From Dimorphilus gyrociliatus (taxonomy: Eukaryota; Animalia; Annelida): a DNA stretch of 64,000 nt. Position 1 is the stretch's first letter. Each line of letters begins with the position of its first letter. Shown piece after piece: positions 17,034-45,600 of this stretch. Location: assembly GCA_904063045.1 (NCBI GenBank), contig CAJFCJ010000001.1, positions 1,860,001 through 1,924,000 on the forward strand, given 5' to 3'. The translations under genes were made by a program, and so were the position numbers. Below the pieces are notes generated by a model. That model had not been told where the DNA came from. It did no database searches and saw only the letters and a program-made list of their open reading frames with translations.

Positions 17034-18555
17034 CTATTTAGATGTCCGAATAGCTCTTTCAACTAGCCAAGAAAGGCCTTCAGCTATGCCAGCAAGTGTA
17101 AAAGTATCACAGTTTTGCACTGACCAAGGTTTTCTAAGTTTATGTAATTTTAGCAGTCTAGCTACTTTTATACATGGTATACGCTCTACTTGAACACTAG
17201 GTATACAGGATAAAATTAATACAGGAAATGCAGGCAGAGACCATAAATCGTGCAACATGGCATTTAGCTCTATTTGACCGTTACTGACATCTTGTTCGCA
17301 ACCTTTCGTAGCATCCACCACAAAGATGAAAGCGTCAACATTTCGACAAACTTCACGAATGGCCCTATGTACTTCGTAAACACCTTTTTGTCGTTCTTGG
17401 TTGTCAAACAATCTGTTATTTTTTAACCTTTCTTCATTTTTATTGCCATATTTTTCTCTTTCCATCTTTGATGCTGAGTAGAGAGTTATGAGATTAAAAG
17501 TACAATTTGTCGAGGGACTATTCATCCTCATTGTGAAACCAGAACCGCATCCTTCAAATTGACCGGGGAACATTCCAAGACTTTCGAAAACATCGCGTCT
17601 GTTCAACATTTGTTGGACAATACCGCTGGTAGACGTCTCTAAACCTGGGCCAAACATTGCAATCTTGGGAATCTTTTTGGGTAACATTGACCGAATTATT
17701 GAAGAAAATTTTCGTAGTGAATCATTTTGATTGTTAATTAAGCGACTTGATTCCGGTGAACATCTTAAATAGCTGGTTGGGAAATAAATCAAATAAAGAA
17801 TACATTTATCTGAATCAGGATAAAAGACAGCTTTCCGTAGCTGTTCGACAATTTTAATGGTATTAAATGAAACTGAAAGTAGGCCTCTTACTCTTTATTA
17901 TGACTAAATCAAGGAAGAGTATGCTATATAGCTTATTTATTAAAAAGGATTGTCTAAATAAATACCAGATAAATCAGTATGAAATTAAACTTGATGGCTA
18001 TACACTTATTTCATTATTTTAGCCTGGATTGCGCAATCATATAACCACTTACATTTCTTTAGCAGTTAGCTCTTCATTTCTGGTTGAATTCGTTAATTCT
18101 TCAGCTTCCTGATTATTAGAATATATGTCTGGATGAGTCGAATGCTGAATAGTTTCCCAACTTTCCATATCTCTGAGGAGCATGTTCTTCCATAATATTT
18201 CATCATTACAAAGTCTATTCCAGTTTCTACAACTGGCTGATATGTGACAAACAGTCTTAGCGTCTAGTAGCGAGAAAATGTATAATTGAATCGGAATTGG
18301 CAGATCGTGAAAAGTTGTCGTGAGACTATCATAGCCTTTTCTAGGCTGTTGATAATCGTCATCGATTTCTACTTCCTCTCTGTTTTTATTGAAAAATTGC
18401 TGCAATCCACCCATCATGATTTGTCGTCCACCATCAATTTTTGTCGAATATATATTAAACAACTGTCCAATGCTGGTGGATATAAAACTATTCAATGTTT
18501 CATCAACCTTGTTTCTGAAATTCATAATTGATTGATTATTTACTAAAACCGGCAT
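17034..18555 (-). CDS. FBXO4: F-box only protein 4, 2 exons
   Basis: F-box LPIPIQLYIFSLLD...ILWKNMLLRD, then the small-GTPase-like substrate domain KIAMFGPGLE, VDAFIFVVDA, PVLILSC, PWSVQNC...GLSWL that characterises FBXO4. Confidence 0.88.
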
Positions 18556-19213
18556 AATTTCGCATTTAATATCTTTAAGACGATTGACAAAAATTTAAAA
18601 CTACGAATGCCTAACTTTTCTGCATTATTGGTCATTTTTATATGCTTGATCAGCTTAGTTTACGTTTATTCCTCCAGCGTGTAAATCGAAGGCGCAATAT
18701 CCGGTCTATAGATGACGCTGCAGTCGTTAGCGGGAAAATATTTTGAAAAAAAGAAACAAAGGAATGAATTAACACTCCATCTTGCGTATATAGAATTCAT
18801 AAAATTATGCTATTACATAAATTCTATTTAACGCGTTTTATTTCCATTTAACAGCTTTTGGAAATAGATTAATTAAAGTATAAGTATAGTTTATTTATAA
18901 TAAAGCCCTCTGGCTAAAAGATTTTCACGAATCCATATGTAAATAGATGGTTGCAGCTTGTACAAACAGAAGGCAATTTTTTTCGAATATAATACAAATA
19001 GTGTATACTTTAGTTAGTATACGTTGGAAATTAATTTCTTGCTAAGATCATATTCCGCATGGATATTATTTCCAGAGAAATCCTTCTTCCTCTTGGATGA
19101 TTTAGTTAAAAAAGCAAAATAAACACAAGAATTTTTTTTCATCAGTTAAGTTTATTCTTGCACGGAAATAATAATAATGACAAAAATAACATATTTAAAA
19201 TATATAGAACGGT

Positions 19214-22200
19214 ATGTATAATAATAATAATAAAAAGGATAATTTGATGAGAAAGTTATCGTCTAGTAATAATCGTAAAGGTGATCTTCCTGGTCAGGTT
19301 TATCATAATGAATATTTTGCTCCACTACTAGAGGAACTTGGTCACGAACCTATTTCTCAAAAACATGGTCAAATTAGAATCTATACGAATCTATTAATCC
19401 CGCTAGTTTTGACCTCTATTTTCGTAGGGCTTTTAATCATCGCCTTAGGGAAACTCATTAGAAATCGTTTAAAAAATGATAAAGTGAATTTTTTCTAATA
19501 CTCGACTTATTTACCGATAATAAATGAAGTCATCCTCCGTTTCAGTCTAAAATAAATGTTCTCTATAAGAAATCTGGAAGAACCTATCCGTATATTTTAA
19601 GCTTATATACTGGTTTTATACCAGGAGCTGGAACAAAGATGACTGTGGAAGTTAAATTTAATAGCTTATGGAATGTAACTGATCCAGGTTTTATTTTAAA
19701 CTGCAATCTAAGCGATAAAGAAGTCTTAAAAACTGGTAATGATGATCATTTTTTGATTTTTACCCAAGGTATTCCTTTCCTTTGTTTAATTGAGCTGTGT
19801 AATAAAGAGATTGTACAAAAACTGTAGAAACATTAGGAGCTTTAAAAAGTGTCACTGTAAATTGTAAGTCTTGTGAGAAAGATAGTTGGTATCTATGCTA
19901 CATTCGTATTCACGATATTCTATGCAACCGAATCTTCTATTTTCCATTCCACGGATGGATTATCCCGGAAAATGGAATTAAGACAGTAAACATACCGGTA
20001 TGCTTCGATGAAACTTCTCTGCATATTCGTCGTTTTATCAGATGCTTTTTAGAATATCATATATGGTTGAGATTATTTTTTGGAAAAGAGTCTTATTTAT
20101 CAGCTTTCGGGTGCATAGCCAATACTCTCTTATGCCTTGGTCACACAGTCGCTGCTTTGACAACTTCCGCTTTAGTATATAACTATAGGTTATAATCATA
20201 GAGCTTAGTTCTATGTAATTAAATTATGAGTTTTATTTACAAACGCCCTTAATTAGGTGTAGCAGTCCCGCTTTCTGGTGGTCTTCCGGTAGTAGGGTAA
20301 TTGAGATTTGTTTTTGGTCTTTTATCCCTTGGATTATATTGGTATTTTTCGAAGTCGTTCTGAGAAATGTAAGGTCTAAAAAGGCCTTGTTATCAGAATA
20401 CACTCCAGCTATTGACCTCGCTCACCTCGTTCCCAGCGTTGGGGTTGAAAAGCGAATTTTAGACGGCTCTAAGCAAAAAGTTAATTTTTCGTTTATTTTT
20501 CTTGTTATATTTTATTATTAACAATAGATTCAAATTAGAAATTCGACAAGAAAAACTACGATGAAAATTCTTTATCCAAGAGTCAATCAAAGATCTCTCT
20601 GTGAGTGACTCTTCCCTTTATCCATTTGCGCATTAGCATTTTATAAGACTATATAGTATTTTAAATGGAAAAGCCTGTTTCAGGAAACTCAGCCAAGACT
20701 CACTTGACTACTCGATAGAAAGATTTCAAGGTGATATTATAAATGAAGAACTAGGGGAAAACAAAATTTCGTTACAGAGAAGCGTTGCTTCACAATTTTC
20801 TGAGAACGTACTCTTCAAGGAAGTGATTGATATTAACATTGGCAATGTAGCAGCTGAACAAGTTCCCAATTTCAACCCATATTTACCCATTTCCTCTCCG
20901 AAATTGAATAAAAAGCTTCTTCTTTCTTTTCCTCGTGCAAGCGGAGACGCCGATTCATTAGATGAAAAGAACGCTTTTTCCTTAAGTCACGATCGCCTTG
21001 CTAATAAGATATCGGTGAATTGTCCTGCTAATGAGCTTCCCTTTCGCCTTTCTAACACTATCTATCAGGACAAAACACAGGTTTATTTTAAGATCTTAAA
21101 GCTTTTAGAGTTAAAATACAGACAAAAAGACTAGAATGTGACAAAATCTATATAATCTTACATATATTATATTGATATATTTTCAGATAAATGAATTAAA
21201 TCAAAAGCCTATCGAATTTATCAACGACTTATCAACGAAAATCGTAGAGGATGCCATGAAGGATGACATGGATAGAGATTCATTAGAAGATTTCGAATAC
21301 ATAACGAAACATCCAATAAGCTCATATCTAAGTAATCGGGAATTGAATTTAATGGTTAAATTATCAATTGAAAAAGCATTAGCTTGTAAATCTAATTTAA
21401 AGGGTGAATTCTTAAGGAAGTGTCTGGTAAATAGTAGAATAAATAAGTAAGTTGATATAAATTATTAATGAAATAATACTCTAGAACGGAATGGAAATAA
21501 AGGATAATCATTTCTTATCCGGGCGCTGTACTGATGGATTTTCGGAGAATGTAAAGTTGAATAGTAAATCGAATTTCCATACTGAACAATTCCCAGATAG
21601 AATCGCTATAGATTCGAATCTTGAAGACAATCAGACCACAATTGATGATCAGTACGACCAAAGATTATCAATGACCAACAAGAAGCTAAAGAAAAATGTG
21701 GGCTCAATACAAACACCGTTTAACAAAAAGGTGAGTCCGTTCAAATGGAGTCCTTCGTCGATAATTAAAACGTCTACTCCGTACGAAAATAAAAAGAAAA
21801 GAAAGGTTTTTTTTTAGCATTTAGGTCTTTTAATTAATTAAGAAACGTTTCCTTTTTTTCTTTGATCTTTGAATAAAAAAAAACTAACATTTCTTTCGTT
21901 TTCACTTTTATTTTTGGGAAAATTCTCAAACTATAATCTACGTTAAAAAAATCCATATAATATGACACGGGATAAACAGCTGTCAATTAGAGAGAAAAGT
22001 AGAGGATCACTCAACAAATTCTGTAGTAAAGTACTTGAAAGAACTTTAAAGAAGAACGTCTTGCTAAGAACCAAAATTTCTTTAAATAATCTTAAAGAAA
22101 AATTCGAGGAGAAGTTAAAAAATAGTCATTTTAAGAATATTGATCAAAATATTAATAACAATAATAATATTATCGATAATAATAAGGATAATCATGATAT

Positions 22201-23449
22201 AATTGAAAGGTAAAAGTGATTATTATAAGTATAATGATAAATTAATAAAGTATCTTTTTTCTTTCCCTTGAATTAATTATCATCTATTTATTCAAGGCTG
22301 TCGAAATTGCGGGGAAATGTTATAGAGAATTTACTTATTTTATTAAAGGTAAACAAACAAACAAACAAACAAAAATAGTACTCTCTAGAATTATTCGATT
22401 ATTAATTAATATAAGTAATTAACAGAGACAAAATACTCGATTAGCTTATGGGATTATGTCAAGAATTGAGAAAGGAGATCAAAAGTTGGTTAATCATCTA
22501 ATGTTATTCGTACTTAGAGAAGCCGTTGAAGGATTTCAGGGAACTATAGAAGAGAGTTTAAATCAGTACATATAAAATTAATCCGTGCTAAAATTAATAA
22601 AATTTTTTCCTATCATTTTTTATGCTCTTCTTAGGAAATGGAATTCTAATAACATAGATACAAATGAGGATAATCTATTAAAGTCTCTTATTGAAGAATC
22701 TAATAAACAAATTTATTTATCGATAGTGAAATCAATACCAGCAGTTGTCAAATTTCTAAACAAATCGAATTTGAGAGACGCTTTAAGGACTGATGATAGA
22801 TTTAACCAAGAATATTTGAATACGAATAGAAACGCTTCGACCAAATATATTGATCCTACCCGATCGGAACTATCGACAAGGACTCTTCTAACCGGTGACG
22901 AGAGGGAATACTTATTCGATAAATTTGAGAAAAGAGCGTCAAAAAGCAATAAAATAGTAAACGAACTAAGAAGAATTGTTGGTATGAAACCAAAAAAGAC
23001 GGATGACGAAGAAATTATGAATATTTATGAGAAATATTTCTGCAATCAATGTCCTGATAGAGAGAGATTAGAAGAAGAATTATATAGGTTATAGATCAAC
23101 TTAATAAGAAGAGAGATAAATTCCCATTCTGAAAATAATTTATTAAATCTTAAGTTGATTTATAATTTATGAAAATAGGTTAGAAATGTCGTTAACGGGT
23201 GAATTTAGAAAGATGCTACCTTGGCCTATAGCTTTATATGTCAACTGCTGCATGATGGTTTTATTAGTATTTGCAACAATCTTGACAGTCCTTAGCACGA
23301 GTTCCACGTCGGATAGAGCAGCTTTAGCATTCGTTTCGACTGCCTGCGTCGTCATTTCAGCCTATGTATTCGTTTTTGAAGTTATGAAAGTCTTTATTAT
23401 ATGTGGTGCCAAGAAAAATTATCATGAAACTCCCTCAGGACCTTTCTAA
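19214..23449 (+). CDS. Polycystin-1 (PKD1)-like protein restricted to TM1-PLAT-TM2-TM3-long loop-TM4-TM5
   Basis: Exons 19214-19483, 19546-19768, 19828-20188 and 20257 onward splice in phase. They give TM1, then PLAT (YILSLYTG..GAGT; LGAL; WYLCYIRIHD; YFPFHGWI), then HIW..F, TM2, TM3 (..FEVVLRNVRSK), a low-complexity loop, and a final exon LPWPIA...VFEVMKVF matching PKD1 TM4-5. Middle exon boundaries are uncertain. Confidence 0.7.
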
Positions 23450-24339
23450 GCTAATTAACTGCCTTATTCACTCATAAATCCCAGACTTGTTTTCCTCTTT
23501 ATGGATTTATGACTTGCGTTTCCCATAAATATATTATAAACACTTAACATCTATTGTTTAAAATAATATTTTATTTCAAATTCTACTGAAAGACGCTTTT
23601 ATAGATGGCGTGGTTAGAAATTACAATTTTTTTTTATCATAATGAACTCCAAACTGCAAAATTCTGCAACGGAATTATAAAACTTTATATGGATAAATAA
23701 TATACGCCCCCAATCCTCTCCCTTCAAAGTCTATAACGTCTAATTTTTTCGCTTTATTTCATGGTCGACTAGTAACATTTATAAGCGCAAATAACTTAGG
23801 TTGTATAAGCGTAATTATCCGTTGATATAGGCTTAAAAAGTAGGGAAATGAGAAGGAAAGGAAGGAAAGAACGGATAGGAGGGCATTATACGGTCGATGA
23901 ACGCTTTATCTATATTGTTTAGTAACGGTAGACCGATCGGGACGATGACCATTTCAAAGTAGATTGATTACTAGCGATCCCTGCTAAGAGAATTGTGAAC
24001 AAGTGATCAAAAACAATTAAGATAAGAGGCTATAATTATTGGCCTATTAATTACTTAGTAGTACGACCATTGGGCGGGGTTTGGGAAAAACTAGCAAGAT
24101 GTATAAAGTATATGCGCGAGTCGACAGCGGTAGAGGGAGAGAGTGGCGATAGAGGGAAGAGGGAAGAGCGCATTCGTCTACAAAGCAGTGTCCCAATTAC
24201 ATTAGATACGTGCGGCGTCATAGCAGAGGCAAAAGCGACGAAAGTGACGCTTACCGACGTCGCTGATTAAACATTCGACGGTCTGGTTTGAAGTTTCGGC
24301 GGAAATGACGCTTTCGTCTTCATTCCTTCAACGGTCGCT

Positions 24340-24459
24340 ATGGCGACAAAGAAAGCAATAAGCGCACGAAAAGCGAGAGAAGGGAGAAAAGCGTGTGCGA
24401 GAGAGTTTAGTTGGATATTGATTTTGAAAATGTACAGTCCGAAAGCGAAGCGTCTCTGA
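24340..24459 (+). other. Upstream ORF (39 aa) in the DLG5-like leader
   Basis: gctATGG at 24340, second in-frame ATG at 24430, TGA ending 6 nt before ATG 24466. Confidence 0.35.
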
Positions 24460-24465
24460 CAAACT

Positions 24466-26885
24466 ATGGACCGTCGCCGCTGGCAGGAACATTTGATTGT
24501 TTGCTCCAAACTAATTGTAGAACGAGCTAAGAGATATACCGAAGGAAGCAATTCGGACGGTAAGTTCTTTTTTCCTTTCGCTTGTTCGTTTGAGTTCTAT
24601 ACTGGCTAGAGAATAAGTCAAAATTACGCCTATTTTCTCTCCTTTCTGACGAATTTTGTTCCTATTACGCGGAGTTGCGTGAGAACTATGTAAAAATCAA
24701 ACGAATAAATCATCAATGCGTAAAAGATTAAGCTGTACAGCTCTCGACAAAATGCTCCAATTAATACTTTTCGATCCGAAACGGATGAAAAAGGTAGTAA
24801 AAAACACGTAAAAAGTTTAGAAAAACAAAATATTACTGTATTTTCACAATTTTTCTATCCTAATATAAATACAGAGATAGACGAGAGTAACGTCAAAAAA
24901 GAATAGGCGTCGAAAAAACTTGAAAATAGGGTGCAATAAAGAAAAAAATAAAACAGAATCTCACCTATTATTATCATTATTATTCAAATTGTTTGGGCCT
25001 TGCGATGTTGACGGATGTTAATTTACATATACGTACGTGTCTAATTAGGTCGCGAATATCGAATATCGTCACAATTATATCTGTATCACTATTGCAAATA
25101 GATCTTTTCGTGTATAAACTTATTCATGTAATATTCGTAGATCTTCTTTAAAGAACTGTAATAACAGCAAAACTGGAATGGATTGACCCTTTTTCAAAAT
25201 ATTTTCCCCTTATCCCTTTTTTTTTATTTATGTTCATTGCCCTCCACCCTTTTTTTTGTTGCCCCTCTTTCTTTCCTCCTCTCTATTCTTCTCAATTTTC
25301 CTATTTCATTTCTCATTCCAATACGGTTTTAAAAATGCCCTTTCTTCTTTCTTTCCCATTTATCTTTGCAAATTAAAAATATATGTGGAAATAAAAGGGA
25401 AAAAGTCGTCTATCTATTGATTTTGAAAACGATCGTTACATATATAACGAGCTTTGACGCAGTAGAATTTCCGATAGCTAATTGTTGAAATATTAGGCGT
25501 CGAAACCAGCCGATAAATCATCGTTAAGAGACGAGCGTGAAAAAATTCTCATGAGAAAATAAAAAAAAAATAAGAAGATGAAAGAAGATATGAAAAGAGG
25601 ACAGGAACACAGATAGAATGACATAGAAGGAAGAAGAAAAGAAAGAAAGTGGGATATATAGAGTTAGAAAGAGACGAAGAGACAGGGAAAATGGAAGAGA
25701 AAACTAGAAAGTTAGAGATAGACTGAGGGAAGAATGAGAAAGGAGAGATTTAAAAGGAGCAATATAAAAGTTTAGAAGATAGCTATAAGGTTGTATATTT
25801 AATTATCGAAGAGCCTGTGAACTGCAATCAAAATAATTTGCATAATTACGTTTGTCAATAGACCTAGTATCGCTGGTTGCTTAGCGACAAAATGTTTGAA
25901 GCCATTTCGTTAGAATGTCTTCCCTTACGGTTTAATATATATAAGAAAAAGAAACGTTTTAGCCTTAAGCTCTTTCTTACTCTTGTTACCGTCTGTATTT
26001 ATTTAGAAAACACTCATGGCCGTAATTTACGAACAACTCTTCTCTAATCATTCCATTCCATCCGTTCGAAAATCGAAAAAGCGCGTACTCACTTAGTTAC
26101 TTTGTCTAATTAAACAGGTATATAATACTTACTAATTACTTTGTAAATCAGTCAACCTGTTTCATTAATATCTTGACAGTTATTGTAAATCGTCATTGAG
26201 TAAAGTAAAGATAATATAAATAACAGTTAATCTTATAATTCCAAAGGTGTAATGAAATAATAGATGGAAAGAGAAAAAAATGACAAAAAAGGCGCGTAGA
26301 ATATAGAGAAAGAGAGGGAGAAAGTGTGAAAAAAGTGACTAAGATTGTTTTTACAATAGAGAAGCCGGTCGCCTACTGCAAAAAAGGGCAAAGAGTTAAT
26401 TAAAACTCTAAATTTAATGAGAAATTCTATTTTCGAAATGAGGAATGATGGTTGACTATTAAATTGATGCAAAATAGTTTGTTGTTATTCAGTCAGTCCA
26501 TCTCTCCCTTCCCTCACACACACTCTCTCTATCTCTCTATCTTTCATTCTTTCGCTTATATTTTCCCTTATTTTCTGCTTACTTCAATTATCGGACGTTT
26601 TTTTCCAACAATAGCGAATACATTTTTATAGATATATTGTATATATTATTATCTATATACTTAGATCTGTTTTCTCTCTATCTTTATGCACAATATATAC
26701 ATAAACAGTATATGCATATATGATATAAACTTCAAAGTATATCTTTATATATAAAGGGCGTAATTATAAAAATATAACTCACTAATACGTATAAGAATAT
26801 TATATTTATATAGTATAGAAGGTTTAATTTAACGCTCTTATTGCCTTTAAGGATAAGGAAAGGTCGTGAGATCGAAAGAGAATTG

Positions 26886-26921
<36 letters not shown>

Positions 26922-29900
26922 GTGAGATAGGCGAGAGGGGGAAGGGGAGGGAATGTGTTTTAGAGATAGTAGAAGATGGAGGAAAAGAAGAGTAGCGGTA
27001 AAGGTATAAAAAAATACCACTTTATTGAATATTATTCACATATTGTCTCAATAATGTACATAGTGTGTTACAACCTTACAGTATTGCGGTATATGATTTG
27101 CGCATTACAATCAGATAGGCTTTCGCAACCGCGCATTACATAGGCTGCAAAAATCGGATTTTACGAATAGTACGGACTTTATTGGCTTTAGCGCTTTTTG
27201 TATACAGCGAAAGAATTTGTTTTAGCAAAAATCTCGACTCCCCCTTTTTCTTACCTCAAGTGCTGTGTAAATATTCAAAATACACGCATTTCTATAAATG
27301 ATAGTGTATTATAACGATTTGTACATTTTAATCTGTTCAAATATAACATTGCAGTATATATTGCATATGTAAAAAGTAGTAGTGTATTATTACTACACTG
27401 TATAATATGTACACAACTGTATGTTTACATACAAGCTAATGGGATGTATATAATACTGCAATGTATAAGTTTTTTTTGCAAACGGTCTATAAGGCTGATT
27501 GATTTCCAATCGAATGGCGTCTCTAGTTTTTTGACCCTTAGTATTTTGGTTTGGCTGAAGAGGCTTCTATCGCCTATGAGATTTTCTTAAGAAAAGTAGA
27601 CGTAAATCTTCTTAGCCGAATATCTTTACGTAAACTTTTCATCGATTCGTCCCTGCAGCGTTTGTGGTGCCAACTGCAAATTGTATTTGGCACATAATCG
27701 AGCTTGTAATGACGACAATTCGTGACCGAAATGCATGTTCTTTTAAGCCTTCCGTATACACAGAATAGTCTGTCTAACAAAAAAAAATTACATACGCCAA
27801 TAACTCCCTCCTAGCGTGCGTGATGTGACGCCCAGGCGTCTAACTCTTTTAAATGCATTCCAATACCCTTCTTCCCTTAGACGTTTCCTGTTGCTTGGCA
27901 TCTTTAGTTTGTTGACGGCACATACTATTTACATATTTATATTTATATAAATATAAATATCTATATACTGCATAGTTTAAATAGAGATTTATTAATATAT
28001 ACATATACATAAGTATATATAATACATACGTATAAGTATACATCTATATAAATATTTTTATATATCCTGAAAGAATTTATATTTATACCGAGAAAACTAT
28101 CTGCGATCTGACAAAGTTTTGACAAACAACTACTCTCAAGTCACTGTTTTCTGACAGCTAATCACAAACATTCGACGCCTCGATCTCTCTACGTGGTAAT
28201 ATGTAAATGAGCGACAACAGTTGTCCCTTGACGTGGCGTATACACGAAATCTATATAATAAATAAATAATAAAAAAACAGAATAAGGCTACAGTAAATCT
28301 TTATAAGTTTCATATAGTACTTTAAGTATGTTCGATAGAAATGCAGATGACGGCCACACATGTTGAACTGGCCACGCGTCCAAAATTTGGTGTCGTGGCA
28401 TGGCTTTAGTATAAAAGCTTAACTTTCTGCTAGATATACCGTAAACTTGCTAAGCAAACAGTTGACAAACTAGCTCAAAAAAATATAAATTGGAAAACAT
28501 GTTGCCTTTTATCTTCGCCTTAGTTGTCTTATTCAACCCTATTATGGGTGGAAAGTATACAATCACTGATGAAGCTTGGTTTGACGTTGAAGTTAAAGAT
28601 ATGGATGGTCCAGGACAAGATTTTAGAGGACGTTTTGTTGTCGGTCTATTCGGTGAAACAGCTCCAATGACAGTTATGAATTATGTTGCCATTACCAGAG
28701 GTTATAAGAGAGGAAGAGAAGTTCTACACTACAAAAACACACCCATCCATAGAATCGTACCAGATTTCGTTATTCAAATGGGAGATATTACAGTTGGAGA
28801 TGGCACCGGCGGTAAATCTATCTTTGGTGAAAGATTCAATGACGAAGAATTCGCTCTCTCTCATCGTTCTCCTGGTTGGGTTGCTATGGCAAATCACGGC
28901 AAAGACACTAACGGCTCACAATTTTACATTCTCCTCACCAAGGCCAGATGGCTCGACAAAAAACACGTTGTCTTCGGAAAAGTCATCAGAGGAATGGTAC
29001 GTATAAATCTCAATTACAAACAATTTATCAATCTAATACCTTATCCAATCACTCTTTTAGGATGTCGTCAAAACTTTGGGAGAAGTTAGAGCCGATCCAA
29101 ATACCGCTGTTCCAAGAAAGAGAGTTAAAATCATCGATTGTGGATTGAACGATTTGCCGAAAAAGTACGATCTTTCTGAAGATGATTTGGATTCAGAGAA
29201 AGATTTGTAGGCCTATAATCACATACCTATAAATTTTATGTTTGTACTTGTTAAAATCGACACGGAGATTAGTGGTTGATTCTATAAATGATTCCTTGTA
29301 AACTTAGGTAAATGTCAGCCTATCTTTCCCATATAAAAGCTAATATATTATGGATTATAATGAATTCTATTTTGAACTTAGTAAAACAAGTGAATAGATT
29401 TATAATTCAATTTGTATTCTATCATCTTGAGTATGGGTAACTTTAGAGCCGTAAAGGGATAAAAGGTTCAACTACATAAAAATTTTTCTCCCTTCATAAA
29501 AAAAAAATAGTAATAATAAAAAAACAAATATAGGACAAACAAATTGCAAACTCTTTTTCTGTACTTATTGTAACACGTACTCGTATGCTAATAAATCCGA
29601 TCGTATTTTATCCGGTAAAATAGAAATAATTAACCGGATGGAAATCATAGGCTTAAAAAAACGCCGTCTATCGAAAAATGAAAAATAAAAATTCCTCTAC
29701 TGCAAAATACTGCAAAGCAGAAAATATTCGAAAAAAGAAATAGAGAGAAATGAGAAGCGTTAAAAACTTCTCACTTTTATTATTGCAAGAAAATTTACAA
29801 TTGTAATATTTTTATATTTTTATTTACTCCTGTCTTATTCCTACTTATCGTTCTCTTCACTCCTCTCCTTGTTCCCCTTCTCTCTTCATCCTCTACCGCC

Positions 29901-36601: not shown

Positions 36602-39600
36602 TTATTTTGTTGGGAGAGGAGCCAAAGCCTCTGTTATAAAAGCATATGGGTTTTTTATTTCATCCTTCAAACCTATAAATAATAAAATCAGTATTAAAGC
36701 TAAAAAGAAATTAAAACGATTTCTGAAAGACACATACCGCTTAATTCGAACAATTGATCGAATGATTGAGCACTCAGCATTTCTTTTTCGTAAATTACTA
36801 GTAATTTATCACTTTGTTCTGTCAAATCATTTCGGCGAATAAACAGAGCGAGATCAGCTGGCCAATGAGCCAGATCACTTTTTACTCTATCAAAGAGAAC
36901 TTTATAATGGGCATCAACTATACACCAAAAAATCACGTAAGGTTTGTAGACTTCAAACGGACAAGGTGACAAATCTGGTAGAACTAGATTGGGAACTTTA
37001 CCATTTTCAGGTTCTCCAAGCACATTTCGGGCATGACTCATGACTATCAGATGCTTCAAAAGGGATAATCGATATTTTTTCCAGGTACCATCATCAAATA
37101 GATGCAAAGCTAATATAGTCCAGAATAGAGCATTATCTACCTCATAGGCATACTGTAGCCATCTCGCGCTACCTGGGGTTTGAATATGACCAATCAAACC
37201 TTCTAGCTCTTTGGTGACAATTCTTGTAGTATTAAGCACGTATAATGCCATATGCATTATATGGGGTACCAATTGCAGATTACTTTGCCTACCACCTCCT
37301 CCACTCTCTCCCGTAAGTGTTCGACTAAGCGCCAAACTAAACAGCAGATATTTTAAATCGTGTAGGGTGTGAGTAACCGTCGCGTCTCTTATACCAGTGC
37401 AGTCTTGAATGTAGGTATTATGCTTTGCTAGATTTGAAGCGAATGAGCTTTCTTGAACATCTGGTCCCCATAGTGGTAATAAGCCATTACATTTGCTGTT
37501 AGAATTGTGTAACAATGCTGATTCCCATTCATCCCTACTTCTCGAGTGGCGAACAGCCGCTACGTGACAGTCAACGTGTACAACGTTCATATGCGTTAGT
37601 GTAGAATAGCCAGCAGATTTTCGACTCTTTGCTTCAAATTCATCCAATTGGGTACGTCTTGTAAAAGTGTAAATGGCTAATACTTTATTTGGTTGATTCT
37701 TATAGCCCTCGCGACAAATACAACAAACCATTCCCGTTTCCTCTTGAATCTCAGCCTCTAGCCATTTGCTCTTTACGTCAGCTTTTACTTGACCTTTTTC
37801 GTTTGTTTTCATTCCTAAACTATCAAGATGTTTATTACGCATGGCAAGGGCTTTTCTTTTCTTTTCAGCCTTAGTTTTTAAACGGAAATCTTCAACAACT
37901 TTCTTCAAACTAGTATGAACTCTGATGCTATCTAGCAGATTTTCTGCTAAAGTTCCTATATTACCATCTGAAGAAACTTGTTCTAATTTGTGGAGAACGT
38001 TTACTAATTCGGAAACACGACTTGCACTAGGGAGGTGCCCTTTTACTAAACCATTTAAAATTCGTAAAACATAAGGGAGGGCTGGCTTTTTTATCATATC
38101 TTTCCAATCATCTTGATCTGTAGCCAGGTAGGTTACTATTGGTGGCGAATGATCTTTCAAATATTTAATACAACAGTCAACAAATCCTTTTTCTAATAAA
38201 AGATCTTTCAACATTTCCCCATTAGCATTCGCTTCTATTCCATTTACAACTTGAGCGAAGCAATCAACGTGCATAACATCTGTAGTAGAATGCTCCTTAT
38301 CAAATTGATCATAAATCAAAAATGGTTCAAAATATTCGGCGAGCGCAATCATCTTTTCACTGTGTCCGAAAGCCAAGAATGGTACAACTTTCATAAGCGC
38401 CTGCAGTAAATTGGATGAGGCTCTTACAAGTGGAGAATGCATATGTTCTAGAAGTAGTAAAAGTTGGCTTGTATCAGCCCCTTGTCTTTTTGTAAAATCA
38501 GCATATTTTTGAGGACTCTGAGCACTTGCTTCTTGTAACACAGCCTCCATAATGGAAAGAACAGATATAGCTAAACTTTCGCATTCACCTTTAAGACAAA
38601 CGTTCAATGCTGTGAGCATAAATGGTATAGTCGATTTGTCTAATAAAGCTAAGCGGCAAATTCTGATTTTCACACAATAGGTAAATAATTTGAACAAAAC
38701 AGTCATTAAATTTCTACCAGTAGTCAAATTTTCGATGGCGGCTAGGCGGTCCAGCATTACATCTAATCCATTACAATTTTCTGCCAAAACGCTCGCCAAA
38801 GCAAATACTTCTTCATCATCTTTTTCCTCACCATTCGAAGAAGTAAGAGAATTTATCATATCTTCAGTAGCATCACCAAGCAGACCTCTCATACGGTAGA
38901 CGACTCTCATAGCTACGGAGTCTCCTTGCTGCGGAACCCATACCTTCCTCCAGACATCTTTTACTGACAGATCCAAAGCAATAATCTTGTTACAGACCAA
39001 CAGTTCCATTCCAGTATCATCTTCCAACAATGCTACCAGTTCGCAGTCGGTGCAAATCTTATTTTTCACATCTCTCATTAATGGACCAATATTAGGAGTT
39101 TTAGTAGAATATGGATTACCAAGCATTCTGCCTTGCAAAAAGTCTTCCTGTTGTGCATCTTTTTCTAAATTTAATAAAATTTCACTGTCGTCTTCCTCTT
39201 CCGGCTTAATCATATTAGCAACTCGTTCAAAAATGAAGACTGGTGTAGTTAAGTCTTCCTTTGGAAATCTTGTCACAGTGTTAATGCAAACGCTCATAAA
39301 ATCTTTCTTCTCTTTTTCTGTCCCAGATGTTAATTGTTCCAAAGCCTCCAGAAATTTACTTTGAGTGTCGTCAAGCAATTTTGTTCTTTGTACTATCATC
39401 TTCTTCAATGACAAGAATGCATTTAAGACTACAGCTAGAAGCACAGATTTTTTACTTTGCTTTATCCATTCGTCATTTACTAAGCTAGTCAATAAACAAG
39501 TTAAGGAATACAAGCACGATCCTCCAGCGACATCGCAATCGAATGTCGACTGCTCTAATTCCATTAACCTATTTACTTGTATATTTATCAATTCACACAA

Positions 39601-42600
39601 TTTCGGAATTAAATCACAGTTGACAACTGCGTAATGACGCCAGCGTTCTTCTTCTATTAGTTTTTTACATAAAATTATTAATTCGCACCCATTACTTCCC
39701 TCAATAGATTCTAAATATGATATAAGCATTGGCAGCAAACTCTTGGTTCTCTGTGACTCATTTAGACTAATTTGTCCTATTAATTGACAGGTAACAACTC
39801 GTAAAGATCTGTTACTTTTACACAAAATGGCTTTTTTCACCCAAGAGTCACGTTTAGAAATCTTTGATCTCCATATATTGACATATTTTTGAACCACGAA
39901 ATATTTATCTGATGGATTTTTCACCCAGTCCACTGAGGCACTTTCCAAAAAGAGATTTGCATTAACGATCGGTAACGCTGCTGTCTTCGATTTTCGCTTT
40001 TCTCCTAGTAGAGATTTCAAAATTCGCACACATGGCAAGGTAACATAATGAACTACACAGGCTGTTTGTATTCGATTTGAAAGGAGTAAGATCTGAAGCA
40101 AGGTTCGAACTCTTAAAGGCCAAGCTTTATCCGACACATCTGAAAGAGAGGCGGCCAGTACAAGTATGCAGTGTCGTACTCCATTACCAAAGAGGAAAGG
40201 AACTTTCTTATATTGGGCTATAGAATTTGTTATTCTTTTTAAAATCAGAGTGTTAACGATATTTGTAGCTTTTTCATCATTACGTATCAAGGCACATATT
40301 AATTTCCTTACTTTGCCTCTATTGTTTATCGTTCCTTTTGGTAAGTTAACATTCAATAAAAGTTTAAAGAATTGCGGTTGGGCCAGTTGAGCACGAATAT
40401 TTTCTTTTGAACATAAAGCTGTTAAAAGGGTGATACAATGCGAGAGTGTGGCATTGGAACAGCCATAGCAATTTTTAGATTTCTTGGAATCTTCAACTAA
40501 TTGACCACCCTTAGTGTACTCAACAAGCTCTTTTCTTGAAGCAACAATTTTTTCTATGCATTTACTTAGATCCTCAAAAGTATTTCGACAATCAACGTTA
40601 TACTTATTAGCCACTTGATGAATAAGGGTACTAACTGCAGCATTTTCACCGCCTTCGCCTGTAGCTATGTCACAGTCGACAACTTTTAAAAGTAAAGTTT
40701 CTAATGTTGGCTTATTTCCCATTAAATCTTTATATAATTTATCAGCTTTTTCTAATAGATTGCTAATACTATTCAGAGCCTTGGCCTTATCGTCTTCACT
40801 TTCGATACTTCCAACATCGCAAGTTGTCCTCGCGTATAGTGAAATATCAACTTTAGCGTATTTGCAAAATCCACAAGCAACGCATAAGAATGGATCTTTC
40901 TCATCGTAGTTTATGGCTCGACATTTATGGCACTGAAATACGTTTTCTCCACAATTTCCACAAACACCGGGAGATGAGGCTACGGTCGCTGAACAACGGG
41001 GACATTGTAAGGTATCTCCCGTACTTATGCTTTTTTCATGAAAGTCAGCATATTCAAACATTAAATTACAAGCTGTGATTGGTAAAGGTAGATCGACTTT
41101 TGCTTCTGCTTGTCCAGCACTTAAACTTACTTTGGATACTTTTTGCCATAATTCCCGTTTGTTCTTCAGTTCAACTATAGCATTCACTGGCCTATTGTTA
41201 TAATAGATATTCAGAGTGCGTATCATCTTCATACGCTTTACATCTGTTAGTTTGAAACTAATTTTATGGATCATATGCGTACTGACCAGCTTAACCAATT
41301 GTGTGTTTGCCGTAAACTTTGTGTCTACTTTTAAAGTTGACAACTTAGCATTTGAAAAGGCTATCTCAGGCGTGTTGCATACCAAGCATGGCTCATTTTC
41401 TAAATAATATCCAATGTCATTATCAACCAAGGGTTGGATTAAATTGGATAAATGCGAATAAAAGGTAGCATTAGGGTGGCTATTCATAGCATCATTTTGT
41501 TCCTTCATCACATCTACAGCTGACTGAACATATTTTGCTATCGTCGACGTTTTTAAATTTGGTGTTCGAAGAGAAAAATAACCCAGCAGATCCACAAATT
41601 GTGCTGCCTTTTCCCCATATTCTTTTAAATCATTCCAAAGACTCCACATTCTATCTAACAATATTCTTTGGTCTTCTCCATTTAAATGTTTCCAGAGAAG
41701 TAAAACAAGAGCATGAACTTGCCAACGAACACCAGTCACGTTTGAATCCAGCATAAGTTTTCGTATCAGATTACTCGATATTAAAGGAGCCAAAAAGGGA
41801 ATTAGATGTTCAGCTATTTGTTCTTCACCCTCTTGAGAAGTCAGAGCGCATTGTAACAGGGATAAACAAGTTGGTGCAACAGCTGAATGGAGACTTACTG
41901 AGCACCATACTAGGAAAGGCAATGTATTGGTATTCTTCATACAATATTGCTGCCAATTTGAGCTCCTTTGATTAGCAATATCCAGACAAAGTTTTAGCTT
42001 TTCAATTACTTTTAGGAGCATATTGTAAGACAACGGCATTTCCTCACCATCATCTAATTGTTTCACTCCCATATCCTTAAATAAGTTTTCAACTCCACTC
42101 ATATAAGCATTTAGGCAGTGTTCGTCGCGAATTTTACGATATTTTTCTTTAGATTGAGCAAATGCTAAAAGCAATTTCCTTATTTGTTTTCTTACCGAGC
42201 TGTCTAATTGAGATAACATCAGGAAATCACACAAAAGAGCATTCCAAGATGACATTGATTCCGGATTCCCCTCATGAACATCAACTTGTTTTTTCATCTG
42301 GTAGACAATTCGAATAACAAACTCAGTTAGAAGTTTTGGATACGATGAAAAAACATCAGTGGAATGACTTTTAACGTATGGCTTCGTGAAGAATGGTGTC
42401 ATATCTGGTAGCTGCATGGTGCTAACCTTAAGAATTTCCCCAGAACTGTGCCAAGCATCTCCAGCATTGTTCCAATGTCTCTCTAGCATTAGCTTTAAAA
42501 TTTTTTCAAATACTTCAAAAAGATTTGACTGTGTGATAACCGATGATGTAAGAGAGTTTATAGCTTGAAGCCAGTCAGCAGGTTTATTTTTACTGACTTT

Positions 42601-45600
42601 ACTTGATTTTAAAACTCCTTTATATGATATACAAACAGATATAAATCTGAAAAATAGGAGAACAACTTCGTTATGTTGTGATCTTTCCACAAGTGTTTCG
42701 CAAGGCGTTTTTCGAATTGAATCGACTACAACAGATATTAATCTGTCTAGCACAGCTCTATCATTTCCTTCGTTACCATCCATCGATGCTGCAAGAGTAA
42801 AGATAACTTGAAGGAAGGGAATTGATTGTAATCCATTTTCCAAGAAGGGAATATAGTCTGTCAATTTATCTAGCAACAGAGATTTCATACTAGGATTGTT
42901 TTCATCCTCCCCAGCTGAAGGTGGGACAGCACTGACAATGCTGCTGGTTTCGCTTCTAGCACCTCCAGAAATAGAATCAATTATTGAACCGCCACTTTCT
43001 GAACCAGCTACACTAGCCACCTCAACAGGTGATGTTCGGAGGGTAGAACCATCAGTTGCCGCATTAGAACCGACTTCATCGTCACTATTTGGGGTAGAGT
43101 TATCGCTATACTGTTCCGATTGTAGACTAAGTGCTATGGCCAGTTCTACCATAGTTGTTTCATCGTCCGCACTTTCCAATTGACTCATCATGTCATCCGT
43201 TGGTAATTTTGCTGGTGTGCTACAACGAGCTGGTGAAGTATCTTTTCGAACTCTCTTCAAAGATGGCTTAAACAAACGATTCAAAGCCATTCGAGCAGGA
43301 AATGCAACATTTGGGAATGGAGACAATAAAAATTTTGCGTATAACCGGCTGGAAAGCTGTATAATTTCACTTTCGCCTGATTTGCAGAAGGCATCGATAA
43401 TATCAATCATAGCCATAACTGTCAGGTCGGTATTTTGAAGGCCGGGTAAACCAACTGGTGCCACATTTCGAGCTAGAGGTCTTGATCCGTGAAGTTTCCA
43501 AAATATTCCAGAAATCTTCATCAAAATATGTTCATCAGTATCACTTATATTATCCAGAAGAGATTGCAGAGTTTCTTTATTTTCTTCATCTTTTGACGTG
43601 TTCTCCACTAAAGTTACATCGCTTCTGCTTGGGCCAGCAGATAAGGATTTAGTTAATTGTTTTTCACAAAATTTTGTTAAATTATATGGTCGAGCAACTG
43701 CAATTGATCGAATGATAACTAGAAGTCTTTGGAACGTATCCGAGTCCATAGAAGTTGAGCTTCCAAACATATTCATGACATATTGTAATTGGCAGTCGTC
43801 CTTATGGATATGATAAGCTGTTCTGCTATTGTGTAAAGAGGCCAATAGACCTGACGCACTCTGTTCAAGAATCTTTGATGTCGGAAGGGTAATGATATTT
43901 GTGCACAAGTCAAGTAAAATTTGACGCTTATCATTCTTCCATAATTTCAATGACGAATCTAGGAATTGTAAGGCTCCGGCAATTAGTCTCTCAGTTCTTG
44001 AACTGGCTATACTTTGATCAGTAGCCTGGGACATATTAACACCTTGTTCATCCATACTTGATTGCCCAACATTTTCTGTTTCATTTCCTGACCAACCAAA
44101 AGACTCCTTGCTACATACATGCACCTTTATGGAGTCAATTATGATAACTCCATCAGGATCACTTGATGGTGCAAAAAATATAGAAAATGAGCGAACGGCA
44201 GTTGTGCTCTCCTCTTTTGAGAAAGGTATATCATACCATCTGTTACTACGAGTTGTATTAACTGGAACGGATCGCCCGAAGACATCAATACTGGATGGTA
44301 TTCTGTTGACAGACTGAGAACCAACTTGAATTCGAATACCCACAGGTACATGAGACGTAGACGTGTTTGTAATTTCTATCTTAAAACCATTAGGGTTTGC
44401 ACAAACTACGTAAGTTCCTGGTGAAATAAGGCGATTTTTGGCTTGAGATGCATTGTAAACTTGTAGCAAATCTTGTCCACCAACTTCAAAATCATTAGTT
44501 GCCTGGCAGTTTTCAAAGAAGTCAATTGGAAAGCTTTGTCCAGCATTTTTAATTCCAGAATTTCGATTCGATGCAATTTTTTTACGGTGAACAGGTCGAT
44601 ATGCTGACATTGGATTTCGCACTTGAGGATTGAGCCAAAAGTTAGTAGTTTCCATGTTTATACTCTGCATTTTCAAATTTCCATCTTCACAAAGAATCAT
44701 CAATGTTGTTCTGCGTTTATCATTTACATTCATTATTGGATGACTTATTAAACTTACATCCAAAATTTTTGATTTACTGGTCTTAACTTCTTGAGCAAAA
44801 ATGCCATTTGGTGACACCATAATAACGATCGGTATATTCAAATGTTGACTATACGCAGTGAGAAGTCCTGGATGATCAATAGTCTCAGACCAATTGACTA
44901 GGGCCTGCTTCTGTTTAGCACTACTGCTCACATTTTTCTGTAGTGTTAGAGAGCATATATTGGTCGCCTTACCCAAGTCTTGCCTCAATGGGCTATAAAA
45001 GGTCTTTCCAGATAGAAAACTGAAAAATAACAACTGCAACAAGTGTGAATAATATACTGATCCTCCTCCACCAGAGATTGTTCCATTAGCTTCTGTCTTA
45101 ATATCGACATGCTTAATATCTATCACATTCGTGACAAAAAAAGCTCCATTTTGAGCTGTTTCATCCAGTATTTGAGTGTACACATAGCCAGTAGAAGCCA
45201 TTATAGCAATATACTGAGCTCCATGTTCAGTTACAATAAAAGTAGCATCTTTAATTTTTCCAGCGGGTACGACAAAATAATAGTTGGGACTAATAATGTC
45301 ATTTGAAAGATTGAATATTTTAATGAAGTCGCCCGTAATGAGAGCAAGAGAAGATTTTGAAGCGGGTAGCCATATAACCTTGACAACATAATTTCCAGCA
45401 TCTAGACTTGGATGTAGAGCTAAATGTTCGCGAACTTTGGCAATGTTGGTCAAAGACAAAACATGACAGTCCTATAAGGAAAAGTATAAGAGGTTTGTCT
45501 ATAAAAATGAAAATTTTTCTCTAGTCACTTACTTTTAATCCGCAAACTGCAATAACTTCTTCATTGCAAGGATTAGTTGTAAAAGACAGGATTGCAAACG

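Follow-up and report, generated by a model that had tools for sequence, protein, structure and literature searches.

At positions 19214-23449 on the plus strand of the window (the whole 64-kb stretch of Dimorphilus gyrociliatus DNA analysed here, C1:1860001-1924000 of an assembly of 77.9 Mb in 349 contigs with ~33% GC) lies a chain of 13 exons. The chain was read from 19100-23600; all of its introns (48-249 nt) are of the GT-AG type and all phases match. The coding length is 3,132 nt, or 1,043 codons and a stop codon. The layout that a first-pass annotation of the sequence had described is reproduced. As read here, it comprises a 57-residue N-terminus, a transmembrane helix (TM1), a PLAT domain that is split by a phase-1 intron, a HIWLR motif, two further helices (TM2 and TM3), a loop of ~650 residues, two more transmembrane helices, and a 15-residue tail. 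Hereafter this chain is called the window gene. It is probably a single, real protein-coding gene that encodes a membrane protein of ~1,043 residues homologous to the N-terminal domain (NTD) of polycystin-1-family proteins.

A codon-usage log-odds score, trained on ~9,800 codons of the same genome, is above zero in all 13 exons, and the proposed frame is the best frame in 12 of them. Of four open control segments taken downstream of the gene, three have a negative score. Hydropathy analysis per exon places one helix in exon 1, one in exon 4, and two in exon 13, and the TM2 candidate in exon 3 is only moderately hydrophobic. The loop exons (5-12) encode 591 residues (N 11%, L 11%, K 10%, S 8%) and have no hydrophobic segments; the total of ~650 residues is reached when the tail of exon 4 and the head of exon 13 are added. 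Pfam recognises no domain in any of the loop exons, and no other copy of them is found in the genome. A search of the ESM Atlas with exon 12 gives no usable match, and an AlphaFold2 model of exon 12 alone is helical but uninformative (pLDDT 41). The protein ends in ICGAKKNYHETPSGPF, with the stop 15 residues past the last helix.

Table 1 Exons of the window gene, its divergent neighbour, and its paralogue. Coordinates are window positions unless a contig is given.
Feature	Position	Strand	Evidence
Exon 1: ATG, 57-residue N-terminus, TM1 (~19382-19450), basic stretch	19214..19483	+	hydropathy, MAFFT
Exon 2: N-terminal PLAT half from ~19582, ends in phase 1	19546..19768	+	NTD profiles, blastp to paralogue
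Exon 3: C-terminal PLAT half to ~20003, HIWLR linker 20058-20072, TM2 ~20103-20177	19828..20188	+	phmmer, NTD profiles
Exon 4: TM3 ~20297-20362 (FWSFIPW), start of cytoplasmic loop	20257..20479	+	hydropathy, blastp to paralogue
Exons 5-8: loop	20528-20600, 20731-21080, 21187-21426, 21485-21730	+	in-phase GT-AG, codon usage
Exons 9-12: loop	21980-22209, 22297-22348, 22426-22565, 22635-23087	+	in-phase GT-AG, codon usage
Exon 13: LPW, two TM helices (~23222-23293, ~23321-23401, FEVMKV), 15-residue tail, stop 23447-23449	23179..23449	+	NTD profile, paralogue alignment
F-box gene (FBXO4-like), divergent upstream neighbour, ATG at 18555	17037..18555	-	Pfam F-box-like 4.6e-13
Paralogue of same truncated layout; exons fewer and larger than in window gene	C6:845936-849177	+	exon-13 search, reading of locus

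A phmmer search with exon 3 against 1.84 billion representative proteins returns 12 weak matches (E = 1.3e-7 to 8.5e-4), each over several stretches. Eight of the matched proteins were scanned with Pfam, and six of them are multi-PLAT, LOXHD1-like proteins. In one multi-PLAT protein (P0009), exon 3 aligns with the C-terminal half of each of three PLAT repeats, with the signature LG-L-S..V....W(Y/F)L..I.I......YFP...W. A phmmer search of PDB sequences with exons 2 and 3 gives no match, and the Pfam PLAT model, run genome-wide, has no match at the locus or anywhere else in the window.

Two profiles were built from the polycystin-1 NTD itself. The first covers the TM1-to-TM5 region of 15 canonical PKD1-like genes of the same genome and was run on the 2,633 open segments that a six-frame translation of the window yields. 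The best of them is exon 3 (E = 5.8e-6, profile positions 131-260), followed by exon 2 (E = 0.028, profile positions 71-132); the two matches are collinear and adjoin at one profile position. The exon-3 match includes the DDHLW-S motif (EYHIWLRL in the window gene) and TM2, and extends to position 260-265 of the hidden Markov model (HMM). The PLAT domain named in the first-pass annotation is thus matched collinearly by the PKD1-like NTD profiles, though Pfam PLAT has no match on the half-domains. A broader profile of 31 sequences, to which 16 PKD1-like proteins of molluscs, amphioxus, flukes, a coral, and vertebrates were added, improves the scores of exon 3 (E = 1.1e-6, whole exon) and exon 2 (E = 0.0022, HMM 77-139). 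With this profile, exon 13 ranks third (E = 0.035), and its match lies at HMM 324-390, which is the TM4-TM5 hairpin. The top three of the 2,633 segments are therefore exons 3, 2, and 13 of one gene, in the right order, supporting homology to the whole polycystin-1 NTD.

The remaining parts of the NTD were compared by alignment. In a MAFFT alignment, the exon-1 helix falls on TM1 of the canonical paralogues, directly upstream of PLAT. A short piece comprising the post-PLAT segment and TM2 alone is placed correctly by hhalign, with a score that is not significant. Exon 13 and mini-profiles of the two paralogues also give no significant score against the canonical NTD alignments in hhalign. On the available alignments, it is likely but not proven that the last three helices of the window gene correspond to TM3-TM5 of the NTD. 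The usual defining features of the PKD1 family (REJ, GPS, and eleven helices) do not hold for the window gene, which is therefore classed as a derived variant and not as a regular member.

Neither the ectodomain nor the channel half that belong to canonical proteins is detected. In the 64-kb window, Pfam PKD_channel (PF08016), REJ (PF02010), and GPS (PF01825) give no match, whereas the same searches find 58, 47, and 23 places, respectively, elsewhere in the genome. The GPS and PKD_channel searches had been suggested as checks in the first-pass annotation, and both come out blank. Channel-exon and ectodomain profiles made from genes of the same genome likewise reach only E ~0.3-1 at best in the window, i.e. 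no match. As a positive control, the channel profile was tried on a gene that had not gone into it, whose channel exons are detected at 6e-11. On this contig, the closest polycystin signals are those of a complete minus-strand gene ~100 kb away. Canonical PKD1-like genes number 20 or more in this genome, and their layout is stereotyped: a REJ exon, an NTD exon of ~780 residues, and a channel exon of ~540 residues. On the 5' side, the window gene is bounded by the F-box gene on the opposite strand, whose ATG lies 658 bp from that of the window gene, exactly the gap given before to a divergent FBXO4-like start. The earlier idea of a stand-alone NTD, with neither ectodomain nor channel, is supported by the blank Pfam and own-genome profiles, and also by a paralogue that has the same design and the same stop.

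This paralogue was found in a genome search with exon 13, which gives one weak match (E = 0.002) at C6:848920-849150. Its exon A encodes a methionine and 12 residues, TM1, and most of PLAT, and matches the broad NTD profile at 4.8e-10. Its exon B encodes FFEHHIWLRM, TM2, and a third helix with FWTFISW, where the window gene has FLEYHIWLRL and FWSFIPW. The middle of the gene consists of ~600 residues of open frames without helices. The last exon encodes LPW, two helices, and E-T-S-K-V before the stop. Alignments of the window gene with the paralogue by blastp are collinear: exon 2 matches exon A at 1.7e-6, exon 4 matches exon B at 1.2e-4, and exons 3, 13, and 12 score 0.003, 0.003, and 0.034, respectively. 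The motifs HIWLR, FW(S/T)FI(P/S)W, LPW, and E-x-x-KV are common to both copies, as is a loop of ~600-700 residues that separates the third helix from the fourth. A gap-free alignment of the two last exons spans 89 residues (25% identity), and the two stops differ in position by no more than one residue. The 18 kb around the paralogue show neither a channel nor an ectodomain signal.

The fold of the PLAT domain could be modelled on the paralogue, whose exon A was given to AlphaFold2 with an 18-row alignment that includes the window-gene exons as separate rows. The model has a mean pLDDT of 84 and shows one long helix followed by a β-sandwich. The top PDB matches of this model in Foldseek are all PLAT/LH2 domains (lipoxygenase, alpha-toxin, lipase), with a probability of 1.00. 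The eight-stranded PLAT β-sandwich is thus seen on the paralogue model, the PLAT of the window gene being split by an intron.

A profile of the last exons of both copies finds these two loci in the genome and no further members. The introns of the two copies lie at different positions, and in the canonical paralogues this region is free of introns, indicating that the window gene did not split off recently from the expanding family. Given how far the two copies have diverged, their duplication must be old. Because both share the missing ends, the long loop, and the C-terminal stop, the truncated design would predate that duplication. The ~1,000 open codons, and the PLAT core, linker, helix motifs, and end kept in both copies, fit a maintained function and not a recent truncated pseudogene. 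As judged from sequence comparison, it is well supported that the two genes form a two-member family in this genome, and that the truncated design is old and maintained rather than a fresh pseudogene.

One earlier suggestion is not supported. The segment YHNEYFA, upstream of TM1, had been read as a decayed GPS tail. Exon 1 shows no similarity and has no GPS or ectodomain-profile match. In the MAFFT alignment, the segment lies opposite the post-GPS stalk and not opposite the HLT site. It is missing in the paralogue, where only 12 residues precede TM1.

Several results weigh against the reading of the window gene as a single gene for an NTD-type protein. The gene was analysed exon by exon, and every search was made with separate exons. 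Its splice sites are predicted from the sequence, and the junction of exons 5 and 6 has two equally open solutions, with donor 20601 and acceptor 20730 or with donor 20605 and acceptor 20683 (the alternative joins 20604 to 20684). A Pfam scan of 10 separate exon pieces reports nothing relevant, the PLAT half-domains having no PLAT match. Even for exon A of the paralogue, Pfam PLAT (PF01477) is the best family at 17.6 bits (E = 0.0067), which is below the cut-off of 23 bits. Exons 1 and 4 give no significant score against the canonical NTD alignments in hhalign. The TM4-TM5 assignment is weak, with E = 0.035 for the profile match and an hhalign preference for a non-significant alignment to TM3. 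In phmmer against the 1.84 billion representatives, no near-identical protein, orthologue, or annotated product of the locus is found, and an exact look-up of six open reading frames (ORFs) finds none of them in the collection. A transcript of the gene was not found either. An orthologue outside the genome was not found by searches that are blind at the divergence of the two paralogues. Finally, the scaffold or accessory function proposed below for the protein is possible rather than probable. Word-index protein searches with exon 3 and with exon A of the paralogue are blank, and one with a canonical paralogue returns ordinary PKD1-like proteins only, none of them identical from the same genome.

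Three other explanations of the locus can be considered. A gene without both ends could be a decaying partial duplicate of a PKD1-like gene, the frames of which are open by chance or because it is young. Such a duplicate would be at home in a genome with a large and recently expanding PKD1-like family; the window gene is also so diverged that Pfam misses it, and the protein and exact-ORF searches found no evidence of expression. However, its 1,043 codons are open across 13 exons at 33% GC, with coding-type codon usage, and it is intron-rich, whereas the expanding paralogues have the NTD in one exon. The second copy is only ~25-36% identical in the best parts, yet has the same layout, motifs, and stop. 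Conservation is not random but falls on the PLAT core and the PKD1-typical post-PLAT motif. We regard decay as improbable.

The locus could also hold two adjacent genes, one for a TM1-PLAT-TM2-TM3 protein ending at 20519-20521, and one for a soluble protein anchored by two C-terminal helices. If splicing skips the weak GTTAAT donor at 20480, exon 4 does stay open up to a stop at 20519; an ATG is present in exon 5, and no polycystin shows similarity to the loop. But the two genes would be only ~40 nt apart, and D. gyrociliatus is reported to have no operons and no trans-splicing (PMC7854359), which favours a single transcription unit. Moreover, the PLAT part, the long loop, and the two-helix end are linked on one strand (~3.3 kb) at the unlinked paralogue too, and the last exon of the window gene is the third-best match of the NTD profile in the window, in the TM4-TM5 part. 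A split into two genes thus has little probability. A normal polycystin-1-like gene, with ectodomain or channel exons beyond the window or too diverged to be recognised, is very unlikely. The 5 kb past the stop without a recognised gene would leave room for such exons, but neither strand of this region (23.5-28.4 kb) looks coding, and upstream the F-box gene begins after 658 bp. The stop follows the last helix at an equal position in both paralogues. The window holds no REJ, GPS, or PKD_channel, the next ones on the contig being those of the complete gene ~100 kb off, and neither the window nor the 18 kb around the paralogue gives a match to the own-genome channel profile. A single gene for an NTD-type protein is the reading that we retain.

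The neighbours of the window gene are of other types. The next exon of the F-box gene has a weak Arf-fold match (1.2e-6). Downstream, 23450-28400 is a low-complexity, CT-rich stretch of ~5 kb in an otherwise compact genome; it is equally open on both strands and has no coding signal. It may be regulatory DNA or the long first intron of a downstream coiled-coil/PDZ (DLG5-like) gene. At 28490-29086 (+) lies an exon of a cyclophilin-type peptidyl-prolyl isomerase (Pfam Pro_isomerase 3e-34) with an N-terminal hydrophobic, signal-like stretch. At 36703-45471 (-), an uninterrupted open frame of 2,923 codons encodes the C-terminal part of a UBR4-type E3 ligase (Pfam E3_UbLigase_R4 8e-275); the gene is ordinary, but its intron-free stretch is remarkably long.

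Elsewhere in the genome, C44:238500-245500 and C123:30500-36192 carry seemingly identical PKD1-like open frames of 300 and 791 residues, with equal scores and ORF ends, and the pair is probably an uncollapsed haplotig or an assembly duplicate. At C21:462455-467883 (-), REJ matches and a PKD_channel match are separated by ~3.4 kb in which PLAT has no match. The locus could be a PKD1-like gene that lacks PLAT and so would be the converse of the window gene. Two dense PLAT runs, with >15 matches each, at C13:1122000-1137500 (+) and C13:1237800-1248000 (-), presumably belong to LOXHD1-like multi-PLAT genes.

In the polycystin-1 family, PLAT is always cytoplasmic (PMC1934368); this would place the N-terminus of the window protein outside and the loop and the C-terminus inside. 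It is well supported that the chain runs from a short extracellular N-terminus through TM1 to a cytoplasmic PLAT β-sandwich, and on through the H-x-W linker to TM2 and three further helices. PLAT would be docked on the inner leaflet of the membrane, and the long loop, charged and mostly helical, would offer partners a docking platform in the cytoplasm. Polycystin-1 PLAT binds acidic phospholipids and β-arrestin and controls trafficking, and LOV-1 PLAT binds ATP-2. The protein cannot be a pore subunit, because S1-S6 and the TOP domain are absent. It might instead act as a PLAT-anchored scaffold, or assist the many PKD1-like/PKD2 channels of its host as an accessory partner; PKD2 orthologues lie at C9:453388 and C14:321338.

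A wider idea, which we consider rather unlikely, is that stand-alone polycystin NTDs are an old functional class of PLAT-anchored five-helix modules with a large cytoplasmic platform, acting alone or as auxiliaries to TRPP/PKD1-like channels, that also occurs in other spiralians. The class would have been overlooked because its domains score below threshold and its gene models look like fragments. Gene models with PLAT and transmembrane helices that look truncated tend to be dismissed as fragments; for the window gene, the genomic context and the paralogue speak for a real truncation. The role of the polycystin-1 NTD is among the least understood in the polycystin complex. In heterologous assays the channel half is active in its absence (PMC8357825), yet the NTD is conserved across animals. 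If the single-gene NTD reading is true, a naturally isolated NTD in two ancient copies would mean that the module has a function of its own, and it would be a natural experiment on this poorly understood half of polycystin-1 acting alone. The window protein is small and would be tractable for studies of PLAT-lipid binding, partner binding, and localisation.

Among known systems, the window protein most resembles the NTD of polycystin-1 proteins (PKD1, PKD1L1-3, PKDREJ, and the canonical genes of its own genome). It has TM1, PLAT directly after it, an H-x-W linker, TM2, and five helices in all, with a topology compatible with a cytoplasmic PLAT. It differs from these proteins in having no REJ, GAIN/GPS, TOP, or six-TM channel half, in being intron-rich, and in scoring below the Pfam thresholds. 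The spacing of the third and fourth helix differs as well, being ~650 residues in the window protein and ~10 residues in canonical proteins. The six-TM, pore-forming PKD_channel unit of TRPP/PKD2 channels is not found in the window by Pfam or by the own-genome profile. Soluble PLAT/LH2 proteins (LOXHD1, lipoxygenases, lipases, and alpha-toxin) share the PLAT β-sandwich and provide the best matches of exon 3 and of the paralogue model, but they have neither the membrane helices that flank PLAT nor the PKD1-type post-PLAT motif.

Other channel-less members of the PKD1 family are already known. The sea urchin REJ proteins SpREJ1, 2, 7, 8, and 9 are expressed proteins, some of them with PLAT after TM1; there is one transmembrane helix in SpREJ1, 8, and 9, against two in SpREJ2 and six in SpREJ7 (PMC1934368). 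Like the window protein, they belong to the PKD1 family and have few helices (1-6) and no cation-channel domain. However, all of them keep GPS and a large REJ-type ectodomain, whereas the window protein has neither and has five helices. A search of the literature for an NTD-only protein that lacks both ends, and in which a large insertion separates the third helix from the fourth, found none. In engineered constructs, the two halves of the polycystin-1 membrane region, TM1-TM5 (NTD) and TM6-TM11 (C-terminal domain, CTD), are separable, and the CTD of PKD1L3 alone, together with PKD2L1, gives channel activity (PMC8357825). Those CTD-only PKD1L3 and PKD1 constructs are channel halves; the window gene would be their natural reciprocal, an NTD only.

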